Below are positions 1 through 55,238 of a stretch of 64,000 nt of DNA, one piece after another; the stretch's first letter is position 1, and every line of letters begins with the position of its first letter. Source of the stretch: Macrostomum hystrix (taxonomy: Eukaryota; Animalia; Platyhelminthes); the NCBI GenBank assembly GCA_950097015.1, contig CATNEN010000007.1:3038001-3102000 (forward strand), read 5' to 3'. A program made the translations under genes and the position numbers. The notes beneath the pieces were generated by a model. The model was not told the origin of the DNA and ran no database searches. It was given only the letters and a program-made list of their open reading frames with translations.

Positions 1-459
1 CTGGTCGCGCAGTCTTTCGTCCAGAGTGGTCCCGAATTCGCAGCGCTCTGATGCCGCTTTCAGGCCAGCGATGAAGTCAGCGAGGCTCTCACCGGGCTTC
101 TGCACGCGCTGTTGAAATCGAAATCTGGCGGAGAGCATTGACGTCTTGGGCGCATAATACGCCTTTAGGGTATCAGCTAGCTCAGTGTAGGACTTGGAGA
201 TCGCTGGTTTCGGCAGGCATAGATTCCGTAGAACCTTGTAGGCATCCTCTCCGATAGCGGTTACCAGCGTGGCGACCTTTGCCTCGTCTTGGACTTCTTT
301 GCAGATGAAATACTGTTCGAGCCTCTCTAAGTAGATATCAATGTCAGAGTTAGCAGAGAGTTCTGGAATTCTTCCAGTTGTATCCCATCCTCGTCGCCAA
401 TGTGAAATTATGAGTTCTGAGACGAGTAAGTTAGGAGTAGAAAACAAGCACGCGTTCAT
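1..459 (-). CDS. gag: Ty3/gypsy (K02A2.6-like) Gag, N-terminal part, runs off the window edge
   Basis: Manual translation, open from ATG 459 to base 1: ...DTTGRIPEL..IDIYLERLEQYFICKEV..KVATLVTAIGEDAYKVLRNLCLP..KSYTELADTLKAYYAPK...ARFRFQQRVQKPGESLADFIAGLKAASERCEFGTTLDERLRDQ. This is a typical retrotransposon Gag pattern. It is absent from the ORF track because it is truncated. Confidence 0.9.
   Translation of the reverse strand, partial: MNACLFSTPNLLVSELIISHWRRGWDTTGRIPELSANSDIDIYLERLEQYFICKEVQDEAKVATLVTAIGEDAYKVLRNLCLPKPAISKSYTELADTLKAYYAPKTSMLSARFRFQQRVQKPGESLADFIAGLKAASERCEFGTTLDERLRDQ
382..399 (-). promoter_or_regulatory. Primer-binding site complementary to the 3' end of tRNA-Ser(GCU)
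   Basis: Minus strand TGGCGACGAGGATGGGAT starts 1 nt after the LTR-terminal CA. The plus strand reads ATCCCATCCTCGTCGCCA, which I recall as the 3' end of metazoan tRNA-Ser(GCU). Confidence 0.8.
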
Positions 460-827: not shown

Positions 828-1778
828 TTACCCGAGCAGTCCATCAAGGGAGAGGGCTCTCCCCTTCGAAGCGGGAGAAATTTCTGGATCAAGCTCCTGA
901 GCTAGCTCAGTGTAGCCAAGTTGCCGACAAATATCAGCAGCTTTAAGCCTCTGAATGTCGGTCACTTTATTTCGAAGGAGGAGAGCCGTTGAGCGGCGAT
1001 CATAGGCGCAGCATTGAGCCAGTGGGCAGACCGCCTGAGCGTCGAACTGGGCGTCAATCTCAAGGTCCACAACCGCAACCGCGCCCGCTTTTAGCAGCAA
1101 TGAAACCACCTGATCGTGGCCATTGGCAGCTGTGAGAGATAGAGCCGTCTGGCCATCCCTGCAGCGCGTGTTGATTTTCGCATCGCGCTGGATCAGCCTT
1201 TCAACGATTTTAAAAAATCCACCTTCGGAAGCCGCCATAAGAGGAGTGTGTCCATCCTCGCGAGCCAGCTCTAGGTCAGCGTTGCTCTCCGGTAAGAGAA
1301 GAATGTCCACAACTTCTAGAAAGTTCAACTTACACGCCACCCAGAGGCAGGATTCACCATTGTTCCTGGTCTTTTTGCAATCGCAATTCACGCCGTCACT
1401 GAGCAACAGTTTCACAATCTGATGAAATCCGTAGGAAGCTGCGGTCCACAATGGCGTCACGCCTCGCGAGTCGGCGATGTTCGGATCAGCACCGCCCTTT
1501 AGAAGTGTCTGAATCACCTCAATGTGGCCGTTAGCTGCCGCGATCCAGAGCCCAGTAACTCCGCCGTTATTCAGTCGAGCGTCAAGATTAGCCTTGAATT
1601 CAATCAGAACAAGTAGACTATCCAGGCTAACGTTTCTAGAGGCGAACCAAACTGCCGTTTCACCGTTCTTGTTTGAATAGTTTTTGTCTGCACCATTCTT
1701 CAGCAGTTTTCGTAGCTCCGTGGCGTCGTTATTCAAAGCGCATTTTAGCAGCCTCTCGCCTTCGTCTGATGATGCCAT
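828..1778 (-). CDS. Ankyrin-repeat protein/exon, paralog 1 (~7 repeats)
   Basis: Repeated G.T[PAG]L..A...GH..VV..LL..GA motifs, collinear with 5392-6372. The first in-frame ATG is 1778 (the track start is GTG). It ends in GG|GTAAGT, so it is probably the first exon of a longer gene. Confidence 0.92.
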   Translation of the reverse strand: MASSDEGERLLKCALNNDATELRKLLKNGADKNYSNKNGETAVWFASRNVSLDSLLVLIEFKANLDARLNNGGVTGLWIAAANGHIEVIQTLLKGGADPNIADSRGVTPLWTAASYGFHQIVKLLLSDGVNCDCKKTRNNGESCLWVACKLNFLEVVDILLLPESNADLELAREDGHTPLMAASEGGFFKIVERLIQRDAKINTRCRDGQTALSLTAANGHDQVVSLLLKAGAVAVVDLEIDAQFDAQAVCPLAQCCAYDRRSTALLLRNKVTDIQRLKAADICRQLGYTELAQELDPEISPASKGRALSLDGLLG

Positions 1779-3402
1779 GTCAGGCAGACATGTTGAACTT
1801 AAACTGGACAGCTTATTCGTCACTACCTATGTAGTGCGGCTTGATAAAGCAATACTGGCTTAAACTGGGCTTAATAGACACTTATCATGATATCAGCACT
1901 ACTTTTAGTGTGTCTTAAAATTATTAGAAAATGGAATTATGTATACAGCTGGCTTGTACATTCAGGAACAATAGAGAATGGAGAGTGTACAGACAGCTCC
2001 TCGCTGGCTAAACTGAATAAGCAAACAATGCCCAAAGTGTGTACACCATATGGGTGCGCGAAAAATAAGGAACTTTGTCACCCAGCCCTAAAAGCCTCTG
2101 CTACTAATGCAGTTTGACATTAAATAGTTAGATGTTCTATTTAAAGCTGTCCAGTCATACTTCATATTCATTCCAGTGGATCACTTTGAGACGAATAAAC
2201 ATGCCCAATGCCCGAAATGTATACATTAAATGATATTACACTGTGGAAGCTGTGGAACCTTCATAGAAGAAGCAAAGAGTCCTAAATATAGAAACTGAAG
2301 CCGGTCCCAATTTACGGACCAGTTTTAGACTGACTGGCAACGAATACACTGGACAGATTCTGGTGCACGGCTTGTAGGATAACACTGATAACTTCATTTC
2401 ATCAGTTTTCAAAAAACTTGTTTAATTCGAAAGCTAGATTAATTCTCTTTATTTTCGATGCAGTTCACAGACAGTCAGACAGTCGGACTGTTTCTTCGGT
2501 AAATGAAAACAAAGCAACCAATGTTTTTCAAGATTGGTTAAATTAAACATAAGTTATCCGAGTAATTTTCACCAGTGTTGGCCGCGTTACCAAAAAGTTA
2601 CGGGGGATGGCGGTAACGGTTGTTACTGACCATTTGGTTACGAAAAAATAGGAACGGTTGTTGCTTTTAATCGTTACTTCGTGCTTTTTGACTCATTTAC
2701 AAAAAATCTGCTCTTTATTTCGTAAGTAGTTTATAAATACTCGTATGTGTAGCTTTGTTTATCGGTCATGACTCATATCATGCTGTCCATTCCAACATCG
2801 TCCACTTTTTTAGACTCCTTTATCATTGTCACTCTCACTGATCTTGACCAATTTGGTTTTTGGGATTAGTAGCCATGAGATCACATGAAGATTTTTATTA
2901 GATTGATAATATTGATGATTGATGATAGTATAATATTGTCTACAGAGTAAAGTACCAGACTATAGTCAGTCTATGAATTGACAAATGAAAATTTCGCAAA
3001 CTTGCAGTTCGGAACAACAGCAAAATACCTCAAATCAAAATGAATGCAAAACGTTATCAAGGTAAAACAAAGAAATCGAAAGATAGTTGCTAATTATATA
3101 AATTTGACTATGTTTTATACTATTAGATATTATATAATATAATGGAACGTCAGTATCAAAATTACTGAGTAAACGTGCTGGTTTATCTATGTATAGATAG
3201 ATTTCGATAAAGCTTAAAAGACGAGCGTATCAATATGAATTCTTTTCAGTTAAAAATGAAGCCACTTAGCGAACTCAAAACTTGCAACCAAGCTCATGTT
3301 TCATGAAAAAAATAGTCGTAACAAAAATAGTCATGGCAAATTATTTTTTGTCGGCAAATCCAGCGCAGTCATGGGTATAGAATATAATACAGTAGAAAAT
3401 AT

Positions 3403-5317
3403 TTAAGAATCGAACAGGTTCAGAAAACAAGCTTCTGAACAAGAGTTATGCAGCACGACTCGGCCGACGACTTGCAGATCTGTGTCGCCCAGGATGTCAT
3501 TGATGATGACGTCAGTCTTCTCATGACGCCATTGAAAGAGTCGGCGCATCGCCTTCAAAGCCGAGCGCTTTATGGAGATGTCCGATGAAAGCAGAGCTGC
3601 GGCGTACAGCTCTTCAAAGTCCGCATTGCTGTTGCTGTTCTCCATCACGCTCTGGGACCAGGCCGCCATGCTATCATGCCATTCGCTTCGTTTCAGCAGG
3701 CGAAGCTTCAGCAATTGCAGCAATACATCGAAGTTTAGGTAGAGTCTTCTCTCGTGGTTAGGCATTCGACTTGGAAAGCATTCAGGACAGACCATGGCAG
3801 TTGAATCTGGGCTGCCCAGGGAATCAATGCGGCAGCACATCCGCCAAGTGGAGTCGCTGTCTTTTAGCTGTTCCAAAATGTCTCGTTTTATTTTTTCGCT
3901 GCTTTCTTCCTCCTTCACGTGCAAGTGACGGCGAAGGGTAGACTTGTCATTGTCGATGAGTACAGAACGTGCTTTGTCGTATTTTTGAAATCTAAGGTGC
4001 GTTAGAACCTCGAGGCAGAGCTTTGCGGTCTTGACCATACCTGGGAGGCGCTCGATGTCACTCAGAGTTTCGTCATGGAGAGGCGGCTCCTTTGAGTTCA
4101 GAATGCGCTGCACATACCGTTTGATTCGGACGTAGGCGCTGTGAAGCTCGTTATCTGACTCGTTCGAGTCGTCAAAAAGTGAGAATCCAAAGGGAAACAG
4201 CGAGAATATATGCAGCGAATAGTATTCCGCGGTGTTCAGTGGTTTCAGTTGGTCTCTGAATCGGCACAGATGCACATCAATTTCCAGAATGACTTGTCTA
4301 ACGTGGTTTAAAATGTCCCACTTTGGCGAATGGTCTCGCTTCAAATAAAGAACTGTTTCAGCAAGGAAAAAGTGCGGCATGCAGTAATCCTCATCATTCG
4401 AGCCCCCCATGAAATTATTCAGCATTTGAAGCGCTGAGATCAGCAACTGACGAAGATTTTCGCCGGACCAGTTCTCTTTAGGTGTTTGTTTTAGCATAAA
4501 GAAGAGAAGTGACTTTGCGTGGTAAGATTTCAGGCCCATGCTTTGATGTTGTTGGTTGCTGACTCCGAGCACTTTCTTTATAATGAACTTTAGTAAAATG
4601 TAGAACTGGCCTTGATCAGTAGACAGTGAGCGCATAATGCCCTGCTCTAGAATCGATGTGCTCACTCTTAGCTGCGTCCCTTCTTTCGCAGGCGTTCCTG
4701 CTCGAATCAAGTGAAATGGGTGGCCACAAGATGCGACCTCGTTTCTCAGTTGTTCTACAATTTCAGTTGGAAAATGAGCCAAAGTGTCTGAGCTTTCATC
4801 GGTGATTAGTCGCGGATAGCAGCACATTGAGTAGGCATAAACAACATCCATACTGGGCGTCGTCGGAGAAGCTTCCGTAGTCATGGCAGGTCGAGAACCT
4901 AAAAATATATGCACAAAAGCCAATTCAGAAGAACAAGCTACGCCTAGATATATAAAAATGGCTAGTTAAGCATTTTTGTTAAACTTACCAACCCCTGCTG
5001 TTCTGCTGAGCTTGACATGGCCATGCTTGTAAGTAACCTTTTCTTCTTCTTTGATATCTGGGCATTTGCAAAAATCCCTCAAATGAAACTTTTGTCTTGA
5101 CATGATTTCTGCAAAATCAATATCAGATTCTGGGCCTATCGACCCGTCCGCCGTGCTGAGGTTGCAACCCCAGCCGTCCCCATAGCTGCCAAGCACAAAG
5201 AGAGTGTTCCTGTGAAAGTAGCATCGCAAAAAATCCTGTACAATGTCTGCTGCAGCCACTTGAACCCGAGATCGTTCCTTTGTGAAGCCCGCTTGCGTCA
5301 TCTTCCGACAAAGGTCA
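3403..5317 (-). CDS. Mab-21/cGAS-like nucleotidyltransferase (cGLR); exons 5317(or ATG 5301)-4989 and 4898-3403
   Basis: GSYGDGWG...ESDID motif and a third acidic residue in MDVVYA. The Mab-21 C-lobe signature reads LRVSTSILEQ..FYILLK..LKSYHAKSLLFF..W..CMPHFF. A 90-nt phase-1 intron (G|GTAAGT...TTTTTAG|GT) joins the two track ORFs in frame. Confidence 0.9.
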
Positions 5318-5391
5318 CTAAAAAGATGATGAGGGAGGTTTTTAAAATAAATTCTGAAGCTTCCCAGAAGCGGCTCAAATCAGAGTGAAGA

Positions 5392-6372
5392 TCAGTACCT
5401 TATGAAAAAGTCGGAGGTGTTCAGTGGCCTGTACGAGGACACCTGCCCTGAATAGGCTGATCCAAAAGAACTTAGCCGCTCAGCCAGTGTACAATACCCA
5501 AGCTTTTGACAAATCTCGATAGCGCGACGCCTCTGCATCCCGGACACCCGGTCCCAGAGAAGACCTGCGGTTGAGTGTTGTTCGTAAGCGCAGCATTGCG
5601 CTAGAGGGCAGACGCTAAGATCTAAGACACACGGCATGTCTTTAGAAATGGCGATGAAAGGATTGGCGCCGGCATTTAGAAGCAGCGAAACCACTGCATC
5701 GTGACCGTTACAAGCTGCAAGCGTCAGCGCCGTGTGTCCATTGGAGCTTCGTCTGTTAATTCTTACTCGCTGCTCGATAAGAATATTCACAATGTCTGTG
5801 AAGCCACCTTCTGCAGCCGCCATTAAAGGTGTGTGCCCATCATCCCTGGCCAATTCCAGGTCCGCACCATGCGTGATTAGGATTCCGACAATTCGTCGAA
5901 AGTTCAGCTGACATGCCATCCAGAAGCTGGTCTCGCCACTGTGCTTGGCCGAATCGCAATCAGCTCCGTATCTGAGCAGTAGCTCGACTATCTCGTGGAA
6001 GCCATAGGATGCAGACGTCCAAAGGGCCGTGACTCCACGAGAGTCGGGAATGTTTGGGTCAGCGTGGCCATCCAATAGTAGCTGGATTACTTCAAAGTGG
6101 CCATTAGCGGCAGCAATCCACAGACCTGTCACCCCGGTTTTTAGCCTCGCGTTTAAATTTGCGTCATGCTCTTTAAGGATACCAAGGCATTCGAGACAAA
6201 CGTTTCGGGAGGCGAACCAAACTGCTGTTTCGCCGTTTTGGTTGGCGTAGTTCACGGGCGCGCCGTTTTCAAGCAGCTCTTTTAACTTCTCGTGAGAGTT
6301 TTTCTCCGCCGCCTCAAGAAGAGCCTCTCCTTGCTGTTGTTCCTTCTTCGGGGGCATTGGATTGCAGCTCAT
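5392..6372 (-). CDS. Ankyrin-repeat protein/exon, paralog 2; probably spliced to the cGLR exons
   Basis: About 7 ankyrin repeats. The likely start is ATG 6372, downstream of an acceptor-like TTTATATACAG. It ends in AG|GTACTG (phase 2) overlapping the final codons. Confidence 0.92.
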   Translation of the reverse strand: MSCNPMPPKKEQQQGEALLEAAEKNSHEKLKELLENGAPVNYANQNGETAVWFASRNVCLECLGILKEHDANLNARLKTGVTGLWIAAANGHFEVIQLLLDGHADPNIPDSRGVTALWTSASYGFHEIVELLLRYGADCDSAKHSGETSFWMACQLNFRRIVGILITHGADLELARDDGHTPLMAAAEGGFTDIVNILIEQRVRINRRSSNGHTALTLAACNGHDAVVSLLLNAGANPFIAISKDMPCVLDLSVCPLAQCCAYEQHSTAGLLWDRVSGMQRRRAIEICQKLGYCTLAERLSSFGSAYSGQVSSYRPLNTSDFFIRY

Positions 6373-7579
6373 GTTGAATACTTCGCCCAGTGTTACGAGC
6401 CTGCTGTATATAAACATTTTTGCAGCTAGCTCACATAGCTGCTGCACTATTCAATGTGCATGTCTGCTCGTGAGGGAAAACCAGGAACTTCTTCCCCCCC
6501 CACAAGCTCAGGATTGCACACGCTGCGAACATTTGTCTGTAGCTCTAGCTTGTACAAAGCCTGATAGGAAGGCAAGAAAGAAGTTCTGCCAGAGGCTGAA
6601 CATTAGAGCACAATTTTAATCAGTGGAAGGACTGCTCCAGACTGTACGACCCGATTCATATTGCTGTCACTAAGCTGGTCATAGATTCATGTAGCCTATG
6701 AATCAACACAGTAGATTTGCGTTGCTTTCAATTTGACTCCAGCTCACTGCACATAAAACTTCCATTTGGCTCAGCTAATGTTTGATTATGCAAATATCTG
6801 CCTTATAGCGCGACATAGGCCAAAATTTAGTGCATAATTTCTTCGTTAATAAGCAAAGACGGGGGCAAAGCATAGAAGAATAGCCAAGACAGGACCCCAG
6901 TGCTTTGGCAATGCTTTGAACTTTTACTGATTCCTTTTAAAAAGAGGGAAGTCAGACCACCCAGAGAGAGTGGGCTGTGCTCCCGGGCCCCATTCCCCAT
7001 TGGCTGAAAGAATCTGAAATCGTCGACTGCTGAGCCCATGTGGCCTCAGAAATCGCTCAGCAGTGCGAAGAAGTGGATTTGAGAAGGAATGAAGCTGCAG
7101 ATAGCTGCGTGGGACCTGCAAGTCCTTCCAGGCACACGTTTCCACTCGGCCTGTCCGAGCAGGGCCGAGGAAGTGCGTGACATAATTAGTGGCTCGCTTT
7201 CGTGTTGGCGTTGGGCCGTTGGCAAAAACGCCAAAGAAAATGTTTCCATCTCGTCAACTTTCGGAGGTCTCCACTTGTATTGCCCTTTAGTGGAAAGGAG
7301 TCACTAATTACGAGATCAGGCAGAAAGTTAACGCCAATTCATTTTACACGCTTATTTCCGAACTTTTGACTTCCTTTCAAAAACGTGTTCTCAAAACCGT
7401 TATTTCGTGGTCCGAATGAGTCATAAGCTCACATATTTGCCTTATTTGGTCATCGGTGGCAACAGCATTTAAGAGTACCTTAACGGTCTGAAAACGCGAG
7501 CGTAGTACCTAAATAAGCCGACTGAACTCTAAGCTAAAAATAAACTTGCAGCCCACCCCAATTTGTCACCGCATTTCAG

Positions 7580-14988: not shown

Positions 14989-15459
14989 CACTCGCGAAAT
15001 ATTTGACTCATTCAAAAATTCCTTCGTGACTTTTCTGGAAAAACTTATTGCGAAGTCGATTTTAATTTTCAACTGTAGAAAAACACCTGCTGGTCCGTAA
15101 AAGTCTATGTTTGGCGGCATTGAACAGAAAGTTAAATCTTGAAAGATGATAAAATACTTTAATGAAGGGGGTTTCATTTTTAACAGAGTCAGGGAGGAGA
15201 AATAACAGACTAGTCTGCTTGTCTCGGGGCTATGGATATTGCTTTTGTCGTCTTTCATTTGTGATTCAGTCAATCATTTTTTATTCGCTGTGATGCAGCC
15301 TTTTTCGACATATTTCATTCTTTTGCTGAAAAAGTGTATGCTCAAGAAAACTAATTTTTTAAAACTTTGTCTACGTTATTCGTTCACTAACTCATTTTTT
15401 ACTGAATTTAATTACAAAAATTTCTGAAATAACTAAATTGTATTCGTCGAAATATTACG

Positions 15460-17160
15460 CAGACTCTCGAAACCCCAACCTCACACACACAGACCCTCGA
15501 AACACCGACATCACACACACAGACCCTCGAAACACCGACATCACACACACAGACTCTCGAAACACCGACATCACACACACAGACTCTCGAAACACCGACA
15601 TCACACACACAGACTCTCGAAACACCGACCTCACACACACAGACTCTCGAAACACCGACATCACACACACAGACTCTCGAAACACCGACATCACACACAC
15701 AGACTCTCGAAACACCGACATCACACACACAGACTCTCGAAACACCGACATCACACACACAGACTCTCGAAACACCGACATCACACACACAGACTCTCGA
15801 AACACCGACATCACACACACAGACTCTCGAAACACCGACCTCACACACACAGACTCTCGAAACACCGACATCACACACACAGACTCTCGAAACACCGACA
15901 TCACACACACAGACTCTCGAAACCCCAACCTCACACACACAGACCCTCGAAACACCGACCTCACACACACAGACTCTCGAAACACCGACATCACACACAC
16001 AGACTCTCGAAACACCGACATCACACACACAGACTCTCGAAACACCGACATCACACACACAGACTCTCGAAACCCCAACCTCACACACACAGACCCTCGA
16101 AACACCGACATCACACACACAGACCCTCGAAACACCGACATCACACACACAGACTCTCGAAACACCGACATCACACACACAGACTCTCGAAACACCGACA
16201 TCACACACACAGACTCTCGAAACACCGACATCACACACACAGACTCTCGAAACCCCAACCTCACACACACAGACCCTCGAAACACCGACATCACACACAC
16301 AGACCCTCGAAACACCGACCTCACACACACAGACCCTCGAAACACCGACCTCACACACACAGACTCTCGAAACACCGACATCACACACACAGACTCTCGA
16401 AACACCGACATCACACACACAGACTCTCGAAACACCGACATCACACACACAGACTCTCGAAACACCGACATCACACACACAGACTCTCGAAACACCGACA
16501 TCACACACACAGACTCTCGAAACACCGACCTCACACACACAGACCCTCGAAACACCGACATCACACACACAGACTCTCGAAACACCGACCTCACACACAC
16601 AGACCCTCGAAACACCGACATCACACACACAGACTCTCGAAACACCGACCTCACACACACAGACCCTCGAAACACCGACCTCACACACACAGACTCTCGA
16701 AACACCGACCTCACACACACAGACTCTCGAAACACCGATCTCACACACACAGACCCTCGAAACACCGACATCACACACACAGACTCTCGAAACACCGACC
16801 TCACACACACAGACCCTCGAAACACCGACCTCACACACACAGACTCTCGAAACACCGACATCACACACACAGACTCTCGAAACACCGACCTCACACACAC
16901 AGACTCTCGAAACACCGACCTCACACACACAGACTCTCGAAGCCCCGACCTCACACACAGACTCTCGAAACACCGACCTCACACACACAGACTCTCGAAA
17001 CACCGACCTCACACACACAGACCCTCGAAACACCGACATCACACACACAGACTCTCGAAACACCGACATCACACACAGACTCTCGAAACACCGACCTCAC
17101 ACACACAGACTCTCGAAACACCGACCTCACACACACAGACTCTCGAAACCCCAATCTTAC
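15460..17160 (+). repeat. 30-bp minisatellite (TCACACACACAGACTCTCGAAACACCGACA)n
   Basis: About 56 near-identical units. It accounts for the 499-677 aa periodic ORFs. Confidence 0.98.
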
Positions 17161-17446
17161 AGACTCTCGAAGCCCCGAACCTCAAAAACACGTACATTTT
17201 AAGGGTTTACACACCTGTCCATCACTCTTGCAGGAAGGTTTCACGCGGTAATCTAGGCTCCGAACAAACAATCCCGCGCGCACTGCAGTTGAGATATATT
17301 TTTTCACGGGTAGCCGCTTACTGCCATGACTCTGAGGCTGCAGGCCGAGTGTCTTTGTTATATTATTATTTTACAGACGAGTTTTTAAGTGCTCTAGACG
17401 AGTCAAGAGGCCTCGGGGGCAAGCAGCGTCTGAAAGATGACATATC

Positions 17447-17460
17447 GTTGCCATGGCAAC
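17447..17460. promoter_or_regulatory. Perfect RFX X-box palindrome GTTGCCATGGCAAC
   Basis: Exact 14-bp palindrome matching the RFX consensus, ~0.9 kb upstream of the GPCR ATG. Function untested. Confidence 0.4.
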
Positions 17461-18372
17461 AGTGCACTTAAGATGCGCTCGCGCGATACGAGCAGGCGAA
17501 TGAGAGATTGAAATTGGCAAAGCGGATAAAAGTAGGGATTTCGCTCTCTATAGAAGAATCCCACCGTTATCCCATGCTGGCCTGGGGAGGCCGGTGCATC
17601 TCTCTGGAGGTGGACGCTCAGGGATTTGAGGGCTTACGCCGCGGGAATTCATAATGGGATTGGGATGCTGCTGAGCAGGGAATCGATGCAGGTCTTGCCT
17701 TCCTTTTTGCCAAGGGGATGCACTTCTGTACCGCCTCTTTCATAATCCCTGGACGCGGCATCCGTCTCTCTATTCTCCTCTTCCTCCCTCATTTTTCCTT
17801 GGGATTTTAATCCCCACCCGCTGTCCGCCGCTTGCTTGCTTAGCGCGTCTCACGTTTCCCCTCCTACCATCCCCCCCCCTTCAAAATCCCCGGCCTTCCA
17901 ATAAAAATGCCTCCCCAGCTCTCCCGTTCCGACTTGTGCTCATGCAGGTGCACCCAGAGTGGCAGCAGCCCTAGCCCAGATCCCACTGCAAAGTTGGAGG
18001 GGAGGAAGTAGGGAAAAGAATGAAATTGCCATGAATGGAGATGAATAGCTGGTCTGTTGCCCAGAGAAAAAATGAAGAGTAGAAAAGTTTCTGTATTAGC
18101 AACTCGGCCCGACCAATGGTAGCAGGCTAGGAAAGACAATTTAGCCAAGCAGCCACCCCCACCCTGCCCAACCAGCCAGACAACCTCCGCCCCCACCAAA
18201 TGCGCAGAAGGGCATTTAGACTCGCAACTGGGCGAACAGTTGAAGCCCGGGTCGGCAAAGAAGAGACGCGGAGGAAGGGGAAGCACTCCGTTAGCGAGGC
18301 ACCGGCCGCTAACGCTCGCTTTGATGCATTAGAACTCAGAAAAGCTTAGAAAACGCGCACGGCCGCTGAGCA

Positions 18373-22240: not shown

Positions 22241-22584
22241 TTCTAACGCCAAGCAGTTGAATCGAAAGAGTTTTGGGACACCAAAAATGAGATAGTGCCG
22301 AAATTCACAGACTGTAGCCAAATGGCCAACAATTGATTCTAAACTTATTACACTCATTGCTACACTCGTTAAAGAATTGCAGCCTTGGTTAAAATGCACG
22401 CCTGGCAATTAGCTAGAAGACGCCGTACAGCCAATTCTATACCACAAATTGTGTACAATGTTTGACTGAGTACAACCCGCGGCAAAAACCCAAAATAGAA
22501 TATACTTTTCATAGTTTATTCGTGTGGCATTGTTAAATCTGACAATTCATTTGACAATTTATTTTAGCAATTTCGTAAAATTCT

Positions 22585-24115
22585 CAGATTCTCATAAGAT
22601 TCTCAACGATTCTCATAAGATTCTCAACGATTCTCATAAGATTCTCAACGATTCTCATAAGATTCTCAACGATTCTCATAAGATTCTCAACGATTCTCAT
22701 AAGATTCTCAACGATTCTCATTATATTCTCAACGATTCTCATTATATTCTCAACGATTCTCATAAGATTCTCAACGATTGTCATTATATTCTCAACGATT
22801 CTCATAAGATTCTCAACGATTCTCATTATATTCTCAACGATTCTCATTATATTCTCAACGATTCTCATTTTATTCTCAACGATTCTCATTATATTCTAAA
22901 CGATTCTCATTATATTCTAAACGATTCTCATTATATTCTAAACGATTCTAATTATATTCTAAACGATTCTAATTATATTCTAAACGATTCTCATTATATT
23001 CTAAACGATTCTCATTATATTCTCAACGATTCTCATTATATTCTCAATGATTCCCTAGGAATTCTCGACAATTCTCATAGAATTCTCAATGGTTCTCATA
23101 GAATTCTCAATGGTTCTCATAGAATTCTCAATGGTTCTAGTGGAATTCTCAATGGTTCTCATAGAATTCTCAATGGTTCTCATGGAATTCTCAATGGTTC
23201 TCATGGAATTGTCAATGGTTCTCATAGAATTCTCAATGGTTCTCGTGGAATTCTCAATGGTTCTCATAGAATTCTCAATGGTTCTCGTGGAATTCTCAAT
23301 GGTTCTCATAGAATTCTCAATGGTTCTCATGGAATTCTCAATGGTTCTCATAGAATTCTCAATGGTTCTCATGGAATTCTCAATGGTTCTCATAGAATTC
23401 TCAATGGTTCTCATGGAATTCTCAATGTTTCTCATAGAATTCTCAATGGTTCTCATAGAATTCTCAATGGTTCTCATAGAATTGTCAATGGTTCTCATAG
23501 AATTCTCAATGGTTCTCATGGAATTCTAAATGGTTCTCATAGAATTGTCAATGGTTCTCATGGAATTCTCAATGGTTCTCATAGAATTCTCAATGGTTCT
23601 CATAGAATTCTCAATGGTTCTCATAGAATTCTCAATGGTTCTCTAGAATTCTCAATGTTTCTCATAGAATTGTCAATGGTTCTCATAGAATTCTCAATGG
23701 TTCTCATAGAATTCTCAATGGTTCTCATAGAATTCTCAATGGTTCTCATGGAATTCTCAATGGTTCTCATAGAATTCTCAATGGTTCTCATAGAATTGTC
23801 AATGGTTCTCATGGAATTCTCAATGGTTCTCATAGAATTCTCAATGGTTCTCATAGAATTCTCAATGGTTCTCATAGAATTCTCAATGGTTCTCATAGAA
23901 TTCTCAATGGTTCTCATGGAATTCTCAATGGTTCTCATAGAATTCTCAATGGTTCTCATAGAATTCTCAATGGTTCTCATAGAATTCTCAATGTTTCTCA
24001 TAGAATTCTCAATGGTTCTCATAGAATTCTCAATGGTTCTCATAGAATTCTCAATGGTTCTCATAGAATTCTCAATGGTTCTCATGGAATTCTCAATGGT
24101 TCTCATAGAATTGTC
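22585..24115 (+). repeat. 21-bp minisatellite (CTCATAGAATTCTCAATGGTT and related variants)
   Basis: About 72 units with block-wise variant domains. Confidence 0.98.
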
Positions 24116-24595
24116 AAGTGAACGATTCTTTTACGAATTGAGAAGCGTTGAAGAGATTTCAATAACTGCATCTGCAATCGTTTATTGGTGAGTAGTTCAT
24201 CCTGGTATAAGGACTAGTACATGCCGTAAGTATATTTTTAAATTTACGGTGTACTTTTATTAGATTTCGCTGTCATAAAAAAAAGAATTGAAGCGTTCAA
24301 CACAATGTAACACTTCCCTTCCTAATAAAATATGCGTTCACCCGTGCATTGCATTTTCCTAAATTTTCCAATCAATTTTTTACCAATACGACTAGGGGGG
24401 GCCCAAAATAAAAGTGCACGCAAATATATTTCTCCACCTCGTAACACTCTTGATTGCTAGAAAATATTTTAATGCTGAACATGGAAAATGGTTAGGAATT
24501 CATTGAAACTGGCACTTCTTTCACGTGTTCGCTTCACCGTAAAACTTTACCGCTATGCATCGATTTGATTTAGCTAGTCAAACTTAAATTTTCAA

Positions 24596-53468: not shown

Positions 53469-55238
53469 CGAGGGGTGTCCAAAAAGTAGTGATACTTTTG
53501 CTCGTATAGCCTTACTGCATGCTTGAAAATCAGCAAGTTTGGTGTTGTTGGAAAGCGAAAAATATCAGCTTTAATTTGACTAAAAAATCATCCTCATATG
53601 TTGTTTTTTTAAAAAGTTATCACTGTCTATTTGAGCAAGGGTGGCTCATAGACTTACAAAAATACTGTATGGTTGACTTTGTTGAGTTTTTATCTGCCTC
53701 AAAGATTCATGAAGCTTTAGAGCTTAACAAATCAATAAATGTAAACCAATAAATACTGGGGTAGCATTTTACAAGCGTACGAGGGTTGCTTTTTTGTCTG
53801 TGGTAAATTGTGGCCAAGCCTTCTTTGCACTGCCAGCTTGCTTCTGCACTGCCAGCTCATTTTTCTTTCACAAGTGCTTGCTTTTTCAAGACCAGATTCT
53901 GTTCAACTGACAGTTATGGAGGTGCGCTCAAAGGAAGGACAGCGACACGCAATTCACACACTATGGAGTATTGGGAAAAGTGGACAGGAGATTTACCATC
54001 ATCTGTGCAGCATTCACGGAGCCGAAGCAGTAAATCGCATGACGGTGTACAGATGGGTCGAGCAATTTGAGTCAGGAAGAACAAATTTGGCTGACTTGCC
54101 AAGCCAGGAAGGCCATCTGCACCAAGCTCAAAGGCTTTGGCTGACCGGATTCTTGATCTGCTGGAAGAAGACTGCAGAATGACAATTCGTGAGATTGCTG
54201 ACAGACTCGACACCCCACGATCAACGGTTCATCTCTGCTTGACCAATATGAACTTCGTTAAGCTGAGCGCCCGCTGGGTCCCAAAGCTCCTCACTGCTGA
54301 TATGCGACTGCAGCGCCAGCAGACATGCCAAGGGAACCTGAATCTGGTAAGTCAACGCGGTGGCTGGAATCAGTTCCGCCAGTTGATTGTTACTGGCGAC
54401 GAGACGTGGGTTCCACATTTTGACCCGCCGACAAAGCAAGAGTCTAAAGTGTGGACACTGAAGGGTTCCGACCCACCACTCAAGGCTCGCCGTGAAACTC
54501 ACTGTAAGAAAATCATGCTGTCAGTTTTCTTTGACTGTAATGGCCCAATCACCATTGACTTCCTGGAGCCGAATACGATGATCAACGCAGACCGTTATTC
54601 GTCTCTCCTTGCAAGCCTGAAGGCAGACATCCAAAATAAGCGGCGCTCGGGAGTCAAGCCAGTCATCCTGCATCATGACAACGCCCGGCCACACACTGCC
54701 CACCAAACAATGGAGGCCATCAAAAAGCTAAAGTTTGACCTTCTGCCTCATCCGCCATATTCGCCAGATCTCGCGCCTGCGGATTTTGCCCTTTTCCCTC
54801 AATTGAAGCGCCACCTGAGGGGCCGTGTCCATGTCAGCCGTGATCACCTTGAACAGGAAGTCCGCAGAGTACTTTTGCACGTGATTCCGCGACAGATCTA
54901 CGCAGATGCGATTGATCGCTTGTTTCGTCGCTGGGAGAAGTGCGTGCAATCGGGGGGTAATTATGTCGAGAAAGCTTCCCTCCCTGATGATGATGAGTCG
55001 TACTAACTGTCGAAACTTCTTGACCTGTTACACAATGCATAAATTCATTGTAACTCTATGGCTGACCTTGTTGTGTGTTTCTATTCATAACTTTGTTATA
55101 GGTTGTGTTTTTGTTAAATGTTTGCAGTCAAATTGAAGCTGATATTTTTCGCTTTCCAACAACACCAAACTCGCTGATTTTCAAGCATGCAGTAAGGCTA
55201 TACGAGCAAAAGTATCACTACTTTTTGGACACCCCTCG
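53469..55238 (+). mobile_element. Mariner (DD34D) transposon, 1770 bp, 113-bp TIRs, TA TSD
   Basis: TA|CGAGGGGTGTCC... and its reverse complement. The TIRs 53469-53581 and 55126-55238 differ at 2 positions by eye. Confidence 0.95.
53916..55006 (+). pseudogene. Mariner transposase with a 1-nt frameshift near 54103
   Basis: The N-terminal HTH (QRHAI..EIYHHL..TVYRWVEQFESGR..DLP) is in one frame. (R)PGRP..ARWVPKLL..GDETW..HDNARPH..YSPDLAPADF is in another, with 34 residues between D2 and D3. Confidence 0.92.

Follow-up and report, generated by a model that had tools for sequence, protein, structure and literature searches.

Flatworms are usually described as lacking signalling by cGAS-like receptors (cGLRs), and we know of no ankyrin (ANK)-fused cGLR, in any animal, for which a trigger or a product is known. 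According to a survey published in 2023, most platyhelminths are without cGLRs (Li et al. 2023, PMC9980059). The same survey counted ANK-fused and TPR-fused proteins as members of the cGLR family and cloned five members from Macrostomum lignano (numbers 89–93), among them PAA45980.1, which is listed as cGLR number 90 in its Table S3 with ankyrin domains given and was cloned for the screen (PMC9980059). The ANK–cGLR design and the Macrostomum family were thus already catalogued in 2023 (Li et al.), and the gene described here, found in a 64,000-nucleotide stretch of M. hystrix DNA (the window), is a further member.

The gene lies on the minus strand of the window, divided over three open reading frames that the original prediction had joined into a hidden fusion of three exons, 2799 nt and 932 amino acids. 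Direct reading of the sequence and a scripted join of the exons reproduced every coordinate of that model exactly. Exon 1 (5399–6372, 974 nt, supported by sequence reading and Pfam) starts at ATG 6372–6370, encodes seven ANK repeats and a degenerate capping unit followed by a linker, and ends in phase 2 with ATA AG at 5399, directly before GTACTG. Intron 1 (5318–5398, 81 nt, GTACTG...TTTTTAG, phase 2) is followed by exon 2 (4989–5317, 329 nt), which holds the N-terminal spine helix and the first strands of the nucleotidyltransferase core. Intron 2 (4899–4988, 90 nt, GTAAGT...TTTTTAG, phase 1) interrupts codon G435, and exon 3 (3403–4898, 1496 nt) supplies the remainder of the core, including the third catalytic Asp, the Mab-21_C helical lobe and a family-specific tail before the stop codon TAA 3405–3403. 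The joined frame (974 + 329 + 1496 = 2799 nt) comprises 932 codons and a single terminal stop, with no internal stops, and reads FFI-S-DLCRKMTQAGF across the first joint and TAGV-G-SRPAMTT across the second. A start at another in-frame ATG, at 6417, would lengthen the protein by 15 amino acids, and the closest upstream in-frame stop is at 6453–6451.

Contigs of three public runs from one study (X2, X3 and X4) were compared with positions 2500–7500 of the window. We read these runs as RNA because introns and flanks are absent from their contigs, which cover only 3180–6351 within the compared region. The contigs skip exactly 5318–5398 and 4899–4988, with ends CT..AC on the plus strand, that is, GT..AG on the minus strand. 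Intron 1 is skipped in all three runs and intron 2 in X2 and X3, and single contigs cross both joints: X2 record 2 (2351 nt) runs from 5814 to 3293 and X3 record 13 from 6344 to 4862. The junctions 5399/5317 and 4989/4898, which the original prediction had proposed as its check, are both present. The donor GTACTG, correctly described there as weak, is in use. Exon 3 is fully covered, and a 3′ untranslated region of at least 223 nt (3180–3402) is supported by X4 record 14, which spans 3180–3482, and by X2 record 2; neither AATAAA nor ATTAAA occurs in the 300 nt 3′ of the stop codon. The 5′ limit of the contigs, 6351, lies 21 nt inside the frame, so that ATG 6372–6370 is outside contig coverage. 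Expression is low, with a contig word depth of 4–8. Since both introns are skipped and single contigs run across both joints, we conclude that the ankyrin and cGAS-like parts are transcribed as one cis-spliced mRNA and not as an operon, and the three separate ORFs are to be annotated as one gene.

A rival to this model is that there are two genes, one for an ankyrin-only protein ending at TGA 5394–5392, where retention of intron 1 would end the frame, and one for a cGLR whose transcript starts independently or is trans-spliced at the 5318 acceptor. The GTACTG donor is below consensus strength, an in-frame stop lies directly past it, and ATG 5301–5299 inside exon 2 opens a 111-aa ORF; moreover, contigs lose rare variants, and minor isoforms could go unseen. 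Against this, the 5399/5317 joint occurs in three runs with 96–255 nt on its shorter side, and the open frame continues through it. Many M. lignano paralogs are annotated with this fused architecture too, and in a relative from that species the corresponding linker is interrupted by an intron of identical phase. We consider two separate genes extremely improbable. As for the specific version put forward with the original prediction, an operon resolved by trans-splicing at 5318, we rejected it on the contig joints, and none of the contigs was reported to end loosely at 5317.

All named relatives of the gene are ANK/Mab-21 proteins of M. lignano. Exon 3 matched 41 representative proteins below 1e-30. 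Source names were looked up for 20 representatives (E 2e-95 to 7e-11), and every one of them comes from M. lignano, as does the relative PAA61004.1 (P0001); ankyrin repeats were found in eight of the nine top matches scanned. In searches of protein collections, the exon 3 product as query recovered two M. lignano fragments and nothing else, and P0001 recovered M. lignano proteins only; the spliced protein of the window gene itself was not found with either query. The M. lignano gene BOX15_Mlig022265 (PAA61004.1, and PAA45980.1, or P0190) has the same architecture, with 936 residues compared with 932 in the window protein. P0001 and the window protein are ~51% identical overall (63% in the ANK array, 59% in the core and 42% in the tail). 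Their three-exon plan, the phases of their two introns (2 and 1) and their catalytic residues are the same; the second intron of the M. lignano gene model falls in phase 1 at codon 427, the equivalent of window codon G435. BOX15_Mlig022265 is likewise part of a tandem pair of paralogs, with an unannotated copy ~1.1 kb upstream on contig NIVC01000673.1 that carries a frame break in exon 2 in that assembly. In exon 3 the window gene is closer to this unannotated, frame-broken copy (57.7% identity) than to the annotated relative (47.9%) or to any other annotated protein. We accordingly rejected strict orthology with P0001, which belongs to another species and is a paralog of the window gene. The ankyrin exons are uninformative on this point, since 90% identity between the two copies in M. 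lignano leaves too little to tell them apart.

For the enzyme half, the original prediction had counted failure of the Mab-21 HMM match as a refutation, and the outcome was split between two profiles: PF20266 (Mab-21_C) matched the exon 3 product with 32.9 bits, above its gathering cut-off of 24.1, whereas PF03281 (Mab-21) gave no match on the exon 2 and exon 3 pieces, nor, even at E up to 10, on unsplit P0001 from M. lignano. Exon 2 gave weak Pfam matches to Polbeta and the MTPAP palm (E 0.1). The region without a PF03281 match nevertheless aligned to PF03281-bearing proteins: in hhalign, the family profile matched canonical PF03281 + PF20266 proteins with 99.9% probability (E 4e-35, 306 columns), placing GS, SDxD and the third Asp on invariant Mab-21 columns. 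A PDB search with the family profile put mouse cGAS (1e-6) and Sp-cGLR1 on top and also returned Mab21L1 and the Mab-21 domain-containing protein 7lt2. The fold was computed on the paralog P0001, ~50% identical to the window protein, whose sequence rows align along its profile. The AF2 model of P0001 residues 294–936 (pLDDT 84, pTM 0.87) matched cGAS in Foldseek (E 2.6e-7). In the structure comparison called for by the original prediction, it superposed on the whole catalytic domain of human cGAS (residues 161–521; VIA Z 13.8, rmsd 3.9 Å, 277 residues), and Cv-cGLR1, Sp-cGLR1, MB21D2 and MAB21L1 each reached Z ~13. The relative is thus predicted to have the bilobed cGAS/Mab-21 fold, a Pol-beta-type nucleotidyltransferase core with a helical C-lobe. 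Pfam, the PDB profile search, hhalign and the relative's model together support assignment of the enzyme half to the cGAS/cGLR/Mab-21 superfamily.

The 932-residue protein comprises seven ankyrin repeats and a cap, the cGAS-like nucleotidyltransferase core and a helical tail of ~285 residues. The ankyrin array occupies about residues 16–290 (5503–6327, minus strand; pI 5.8). Pfam matched exon 1 with Ank_2 (E 2.4e-42), Ank (E 7e-38) and Ank_3 in five stretches, within residues 68–240, so that the ankyrin assignment, like that of Mab-21_C, clears the Pfam cut-off. The register, and the count of seven 33-residue tandem units plus a capping unit, were read by eye from the translation, in agreement with the roughly seven repeats originally proposed. 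The catalytic domain covers about residues 335–650 (4252–5289, minus strand), spans intron 2 and has a pI of ~7.0, compared with 6.3 for the whole protein (both computed). Its limits come from the alignment of the relative's model (model residues 14–351) with human cGAS and from the 306 hhalign columns shared with Mab-21 proteins. The C-terminal tail (residues 645–932; 3406–4269, minus strand) is predicted to consist largely of helices plus a small sheet, in a loosely TPR-like arrangement, and its conservation is confined to the Macrostomum family. Its AF2 model (pLDDT 78, pTM 0.79) had no PDB match at E ≤ 0.001 in Foldseek (best E 0.024). The best Z in a wide VIA search was 7.7, inside the noise range for helical repeats, and ESM Atlas gave TPR-type matches throughout, with TM by query of at most 0.48. 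We therefore assign no specific fold to the tail, as every match was to a generic protein of TPR-like or helical-repeat type and fell inside the noise range.

The GS, E-S-D-I-D and MDVV motifs picked out in the original prediction correspond to G368-S369 (5190–5185, exon 2), E388-S-D390-I-D392 (exon 2, with D390 at 5124–5122 and D392 at 5118–5116) and M451-D452-V-V (exon 3, with the third catalytic Asp at 4848–4846). The protein therefore carries the [G/S]S activation-loop motif of the cGLR definition and the triad [E/D]h[E/D]...h[E/D]h, as D390-I-D392 and M-D452-V. The D392–D452 spacing of 60 falls within the 50–90 residues between triad parts set by the cGLR rule (Li et al. 2023). The catalytic columns are in register with G59, S60, D85, D87 and D195 of the canonical Mab-21 profile. 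Conservation in the family is high, with G368 kept in 28/28 members, S369 in 27/28, D390 in 26/28, D392 in 27/28 and D452 in 24/27. By sequence, all predicted catalytic residues are present and conserved across the Macrostomum family.

An intact site of this kind might also serve an active nucleotidyltransferase that is not a cyclic-dinucleotide immune sensor. Such an enzyme would have another product, for example linear 2′–5′ or 3′–5′ oligonucleotides, as in OAS, or would transfer nucleotides onto a protein or an RNA bound at the ankyrin array or tail. The motif G-S-x20-S-D-I-D with h-D-V-h-x-A is common to the wider Pol-beta/OAS superfamily, the spacer between GS and DxD is ~9 residues longer in the Macrostomum family than in canonical Mab-21 proteins, and two flanking protein-binding modules would suit the recruitment of a substrate as well. 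To our knowledge, no product has been reported for any enzyme of the family. The matches point the other way: cGAS and cGLRs rank first, and neither OAS chains nor poly(A) polymerases appear among the top matches listed in the profile and fold searches. There was no OAS Pfam match, the helical lobe being Mab-21_C and not OAS1_C. Furthermore, Li et al. placed these Macrostomum proteins inside the cGLR tree (2023, PMC9980059). We regard a product of this other kind as unlikely.

Loss of catalysis was weighed as a further alternative. The Mab-21 fold might be structural or nucleotide-binding, as proposed for Mab21L1/2, with the protein acting as a scaffold through the surfaces of its ankyrin array and tail. 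MAB21L1 matched the relative's model with Z 13.1, equal to the cGLRs, and M. lignano members are absent from the 15 active enzymes selected by Li et al., a set drawn from insects, anemones, molluscs, hydras and corals (2023, PMC9980059). The transcript contigs differ from the genome at six positions, five of which alter an amino acid, which could mean relaxed constraint; however, these five changes are conservative and all lie outside the motifs, and the sole difference inside a motif is synonymous (S389). The five catalytic positions are also kept in 24–28 of 27–28 paralogs that have diverged to 20–50% identity, a pattern that speaks for catalysis being under selection. A non-catalytic scaffold is improbable on this evidence.

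We favour, with a probability of roughly 60%, the reading that the gene encodes a soluble, cytosolic pattern-recognition enzyme of 932 residues, built from an ankyrin array, a cGLR core with a complete site and a TPR-like tail. For the window protein itself, catalysis, product, trigger, the part played by the repeats and an immune role are what we infer. At rest, the GS activation loop would hold the site in an unproductive state, and binding of the trigger would reorder it. With two metal ions coordinated by D390, D392 and D452, the enzyme would next link two NTPs to give a small nucleotide second messenger. This would probably be a cyclic dinucleotide, and a STING-type receptor would read it; literature searches for STING in Macrostomum gave nothing relevant. 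We consider naked dsDNA or dsRNA less likely as the trigger than a protein or some other ligand that is not a nucleic acid, captured by the ankyrin array, the tail or both, because the core is near neutral, not basic, and is flanked by two protein-binding repeat modules. These features are a hint of such a trigger; nucleic-acid-sensing cGLRs have a pI above 8.5 (Li et al., PMC9980059). A more specific version, to which we give a low probability, is a protein-sensing cGLR in which a pathogen or damage protein is bound through the repeats and the messenger acts on putative membrane-free double TIR–STING receptors. If true, this would amount to a fully soluble cGLR–STING–TIR pathway in animals whose phylum has long been regarded as having lost the axis.

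As a cleanly resolved, transcript-supported and intact member of the Macrostomum expansion, the locus provides a usable construct for asking what ANK–cGLR fusions sense, what they make and whether enzyme activity is switched on or held back by the repeats.

Counterparts by description are the ANK-fused cGLRs of other animals, for example in Stylophora pistillata, which combine an ankyrin module with a core predicted to have a complete active site (Li et al. 2023, Figs. 1C and 4C). The helical tail of the window protein was found only in the Macrostomum family. Vertebrate cGAS shares with the window protein the bilobed Mab-21 fold, the GS activation loop and the acidic triad, at only 13–18% identity. 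Its DNA-binding surface is basic, whereas the window core is near neutral, and the ankyrin array and the tail are additions of the window protein. In place of the zinc-thumb motif of cGAS, H(X5)CC(X6)C, and not aligned to it, the window protein has the family-conserved set H403, C408, C410, H425 and C460, located after the DxD strand and before the third Asp. Canonical Mab-21 + Mab-21_C proteins (~700 aa; P0077–P0139, ENA) have the motifs GS-x-x-EG, SDxD and D-x-V-x-A-x-x-C-x-x-P in common with the Macrostomum family, and some carry TPR tails, so that a repeat module follows the enzyme as in the window protein. They have no ankyrin array, and PF03281 matches their N-terminal half but not that of the Macrostomum family. 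Finally, Mab21L1 is an example of the fold existing without known catalysis; MAB21L1 and MB21D2 share the fold of the window family at Z ~13, and it is the window protein that has kept the complete predicted active site.

The window gene was reproduced to the base as the three-exon model of the original prediction, by reading the minus strand and joining the exons by script: exon 1 (6372-5399, 974 nt), intron 1 (5398-5318, 81 nt, GTACTG...TTTTTAG), exon 2 (5317-4989, 329 nt), intron 2 (4988-4899, 90 nt, GTAAGT...TTTTTAG) and exon 3 (4898-3403, 1496 nt, closed by TAA). Together the exons form an open frame of 2799 nt and 932 codons with zero internal stops, and a mechanical ORF list does break it, as had been noted, into pieces of 351, 111 and 506 amino acids. 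Searching public reads with 3300-6500 found four runs of one study, each with 73-81% of the sampled words; contigs from three of these, and from a small-share run of another study, were compared with 2500-7500, where their coverage was confined to 3180-6351. Intron 1 (5318-5398) was precisely absent from contigs of the runs X2, X3 and X4, and intron 2 (4899-4988) from those of X2 and X3. Both joints were crossed by record 2 of X2 (2351 nt, 5814 to 3293) and by record 13 of X3 (6344 to 4862). The runs carry no record of RNA, but we take them to be transcriptomic because introns and flanks are absent from the contigs, as in a transcriptome assembly; a DNA run would look different. The competing proposal, a two-gene operon resolved by trans-splicing at the 5318 acceptor, is contradicted by the finding of both joints within single contigs, with no loose contig end seen at 5317 over 2500-7500; one loose end was reported, in X4 at 4987, and it is the start of exon 3. 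Since the introns are skipped exactly and both joints lie in single contigs, we conclude that the window gene is expressed as one cis-spliced mRNA, in which the weak GTACTG donor joins the ankyrin exon to the enzyme exons as predicted; minor isoforms may exist that contigs do not show. The ATG at 6372 lies beyond the reach of the contigs, which end at 6351, and an alternative in-frame ATG is present at 6417. Alignment of an M. lignano relative's N-terminus from its first residues favours the start at 6372.

In Pfam searches, exon 1 matched ankyrin repeats (Ank_2, E = 2e-42), and by eye seven repeats of 33 residues and a degenerate cap could be counted, in keeping with the roughly seven proposed. 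Exon 2 gave weak Pol-beta-type palm matches and nothing more, and exon 3 matched Mab-21_C over its cut-off. PF03281, a defining Pfam Mab-21 model, had no match in the window pieces or in the unsplit M. lignano relative, even at E up to 10, so the expected domain matches were recovered for Ank and Mab-21_C and not for PF03281. Searched exhaustively with HMMER, the exon 3 product matched 181 representatives, 41 of them with E < 1e-30. Macrostomum lignano was the source of all 20 representatives looked up by name (E from 2e-95 to 7e-11), as well as of PAA61004.1 (P0001), and ankyrin repeats preceded the Mab-21_C region in 8 of the 9 top matches scanned. Weaker matches (E from 1e-9 to 1e-4) were proteins of about 700 amino acids with both Pfam Mab-21 halves and, in some, a TPR tail. 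P0001, the best annotated relative, has 936 amino acids and is about 51% identical to the window protein (63% in the ankyrin region, 59% in the core and 42% in the tail). The tail, comprising the last ~285 residues, is a domain conserved solely within the Macrostomum family; its model, built on the window sequence itself (pLDDT 78), was helical with a small sheet, and fold searches with it returned generic TPR-like matches alone, all within noise.

Searched against the PDB, the family profile found mouse cGAS (1e-6), Sp-cGLR1, MAB21L1 and the Mab-21 domain-containing protein 7lt2, and no others. Profile-profile comparison with canonical Mab-21 proteins gave a probability of 99.9% (E = 4e-35, 306 columns), with the family GS, SDxD and third Asp in register with the invariant G59/S60, D85/D87 and D195 of the canonical alignment. 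As a stand-in for the window's spliced protein, the enzyme half of P0001 was folded using the family alignment. The resulting model (pLDDT 84, pTM 0.87) had cGAS on top in Foldseek (E = 2.6e-7) and, by VIA-align, matched human cGAS residues 161-521 with Z 13.8 (rmsd 3.9 Å, 277 residues) and Cv-cGLR1, Sp-cGLR1, MB21D2 and MAB21L1 with Z ~13, bearing out on this relative the predicted likeness to cGAS and cGLRs. Profile and predicted fold thus place the enzyme region in the cGAS/cGLR superfamily despite the lack of a PF03281 match. Together with the spliced contigs and the Pfam matches, they uphold the identification of a hidden ANK-cGLR fusion gene.

The GS, acidic motif and third Asp were located in the window protein at G368-S369, D390, D392 and D452, the second and third Asp being 60 residues apart; these five positions are kept in 28, 27, 26, 27 and 24, respectively, of 27-28 diverged family rows. 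Contigs and genome differed at six single bases (3483, 3929, 4077, 5090, 5125 and 6169), too few for a selection test. Five are conservative replacements outside the motif (T907A, R758H, H709Y, K401R and E68D), and the sole difference inside it, at S389, is synonymous. Family-wide retention of the active-site residues and the synonymous S389 difference support, short of proof, a putative catalytically competent enzyme. The computed pI is 7.0 for the core, near neutral, and 6.3 for the whole, acidic protein; cGLRs that sense dsDNA and dsRNA have a pI > 8.5 (Li et al. 2023, PMC9980059). A neutral core with two repeat modules on its flanks suggests that the trigger is not nucleic acid. H403, C408, C410, H425 and C460 (4823-5085, minus strand), which lie between the DxD strand and the third Asp, occur in 85-96% of family rows and may form a family-specific metal site, placed elsewhere than the cGAS zinc thumb. 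Any role of the ankyrin repeats, product or immune function of the kind originally proposed is something that we infer for this protein.

The P0001 gene is likewise built of three exons (911, 368 and 1532 nt), separated by a phase 2 and a phase 1 intron; its second intron falls at the identical codon as in the window gene and its first in the same variable linker. A second M. lignano ANK-cGLR copy, which has no gene call (NIVC01000673.1, 1730-4739), is found about 1.1 kb upstream on that strand; its exon 1 is open for 323 amino acids and its exon 3 for 498. Its exon 2 has an in-frame stop and then a frame shift after ...FTKESR; this break may be genuine or may come from a sequencing indel in that assembly. 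In exon 3 the uncalled copy is nearer to the window gene than any annotated protein (57.7% identity, compared with 47.9% for P0001). The uncalled copy and its neighbour, the P0001 gene, share 90% identity in the ankyrin exon and only 49% in the exon 3 products, a contrast that looks like gene conversion restricted to the ankyrin exon. At a second M. lignano locus (NIVC01002079.1, 6647-8699), ~2 kb of sequence breaks up the match to the tail of the upstream copy, which suggests that exon 3 of that allele or homeolog carries an insertion. The window itself holds a second ankyrin exon (831-1802, minus strand; ATG at 1778-1776, GTAAGT donor near 831) that is 57-59% identical to exon 1. It is the tandem partner of the window gene, with any enzyme exons outside the window; a gag-like retroelement frame (1-440, minus strand) lies downstream of it and continues past the window edge. 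Given tandem pairs in both the window and M. lignano, the pair is older than the split between M. hystrix and M. lignano.

Elsewhere on the plus strand of the window, an ORF at 54137-55006 carries mariner/Tc1-type transposase domains (Transposase_1, DDE_3) and an N-terminal HTH, and a 336-amino-acid ORF at 18373-19383 matches a rhodopsin-family 7TM receptor with 31.1 bits, barely over the Pfam cut-off of 30.5. Long ORFs matching pentapeptide repeats (15408-17471, both strands) and an ice-binding beta-roll repeat (22524-24191, plus strand) are probably tandem short repeats, not genes.

Some cGLRs are known to carry ankyrin or TPR modules, and nematodes and most platyhelminths are reported to have no cGLRs besides Mab21-like proteins (Li et al. 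2023, PMC9980059). Table S2 of that study lists the M. lignano protein PAA45980.1, which shares a 90% cluster with P0001, with three Ank_2 matches, and Table S3 has it among the biochemically screened proteins, as clone 90, alongside four other M. lignano proteins. The 15 active enzymes selected there came from insects, anemones, molluscs, hydras and corals, so no product is reported for the Macrostomum family; we found no literature after Li et al. 2023 on flatworm or ankyrin-fused cGLRs. The window gene therefore adds one member to an already listed kind, ANK-cGLR, and its modest interest is as an intact, transcript-supported copy from an uncharacterised flatworm cGLR expansion.
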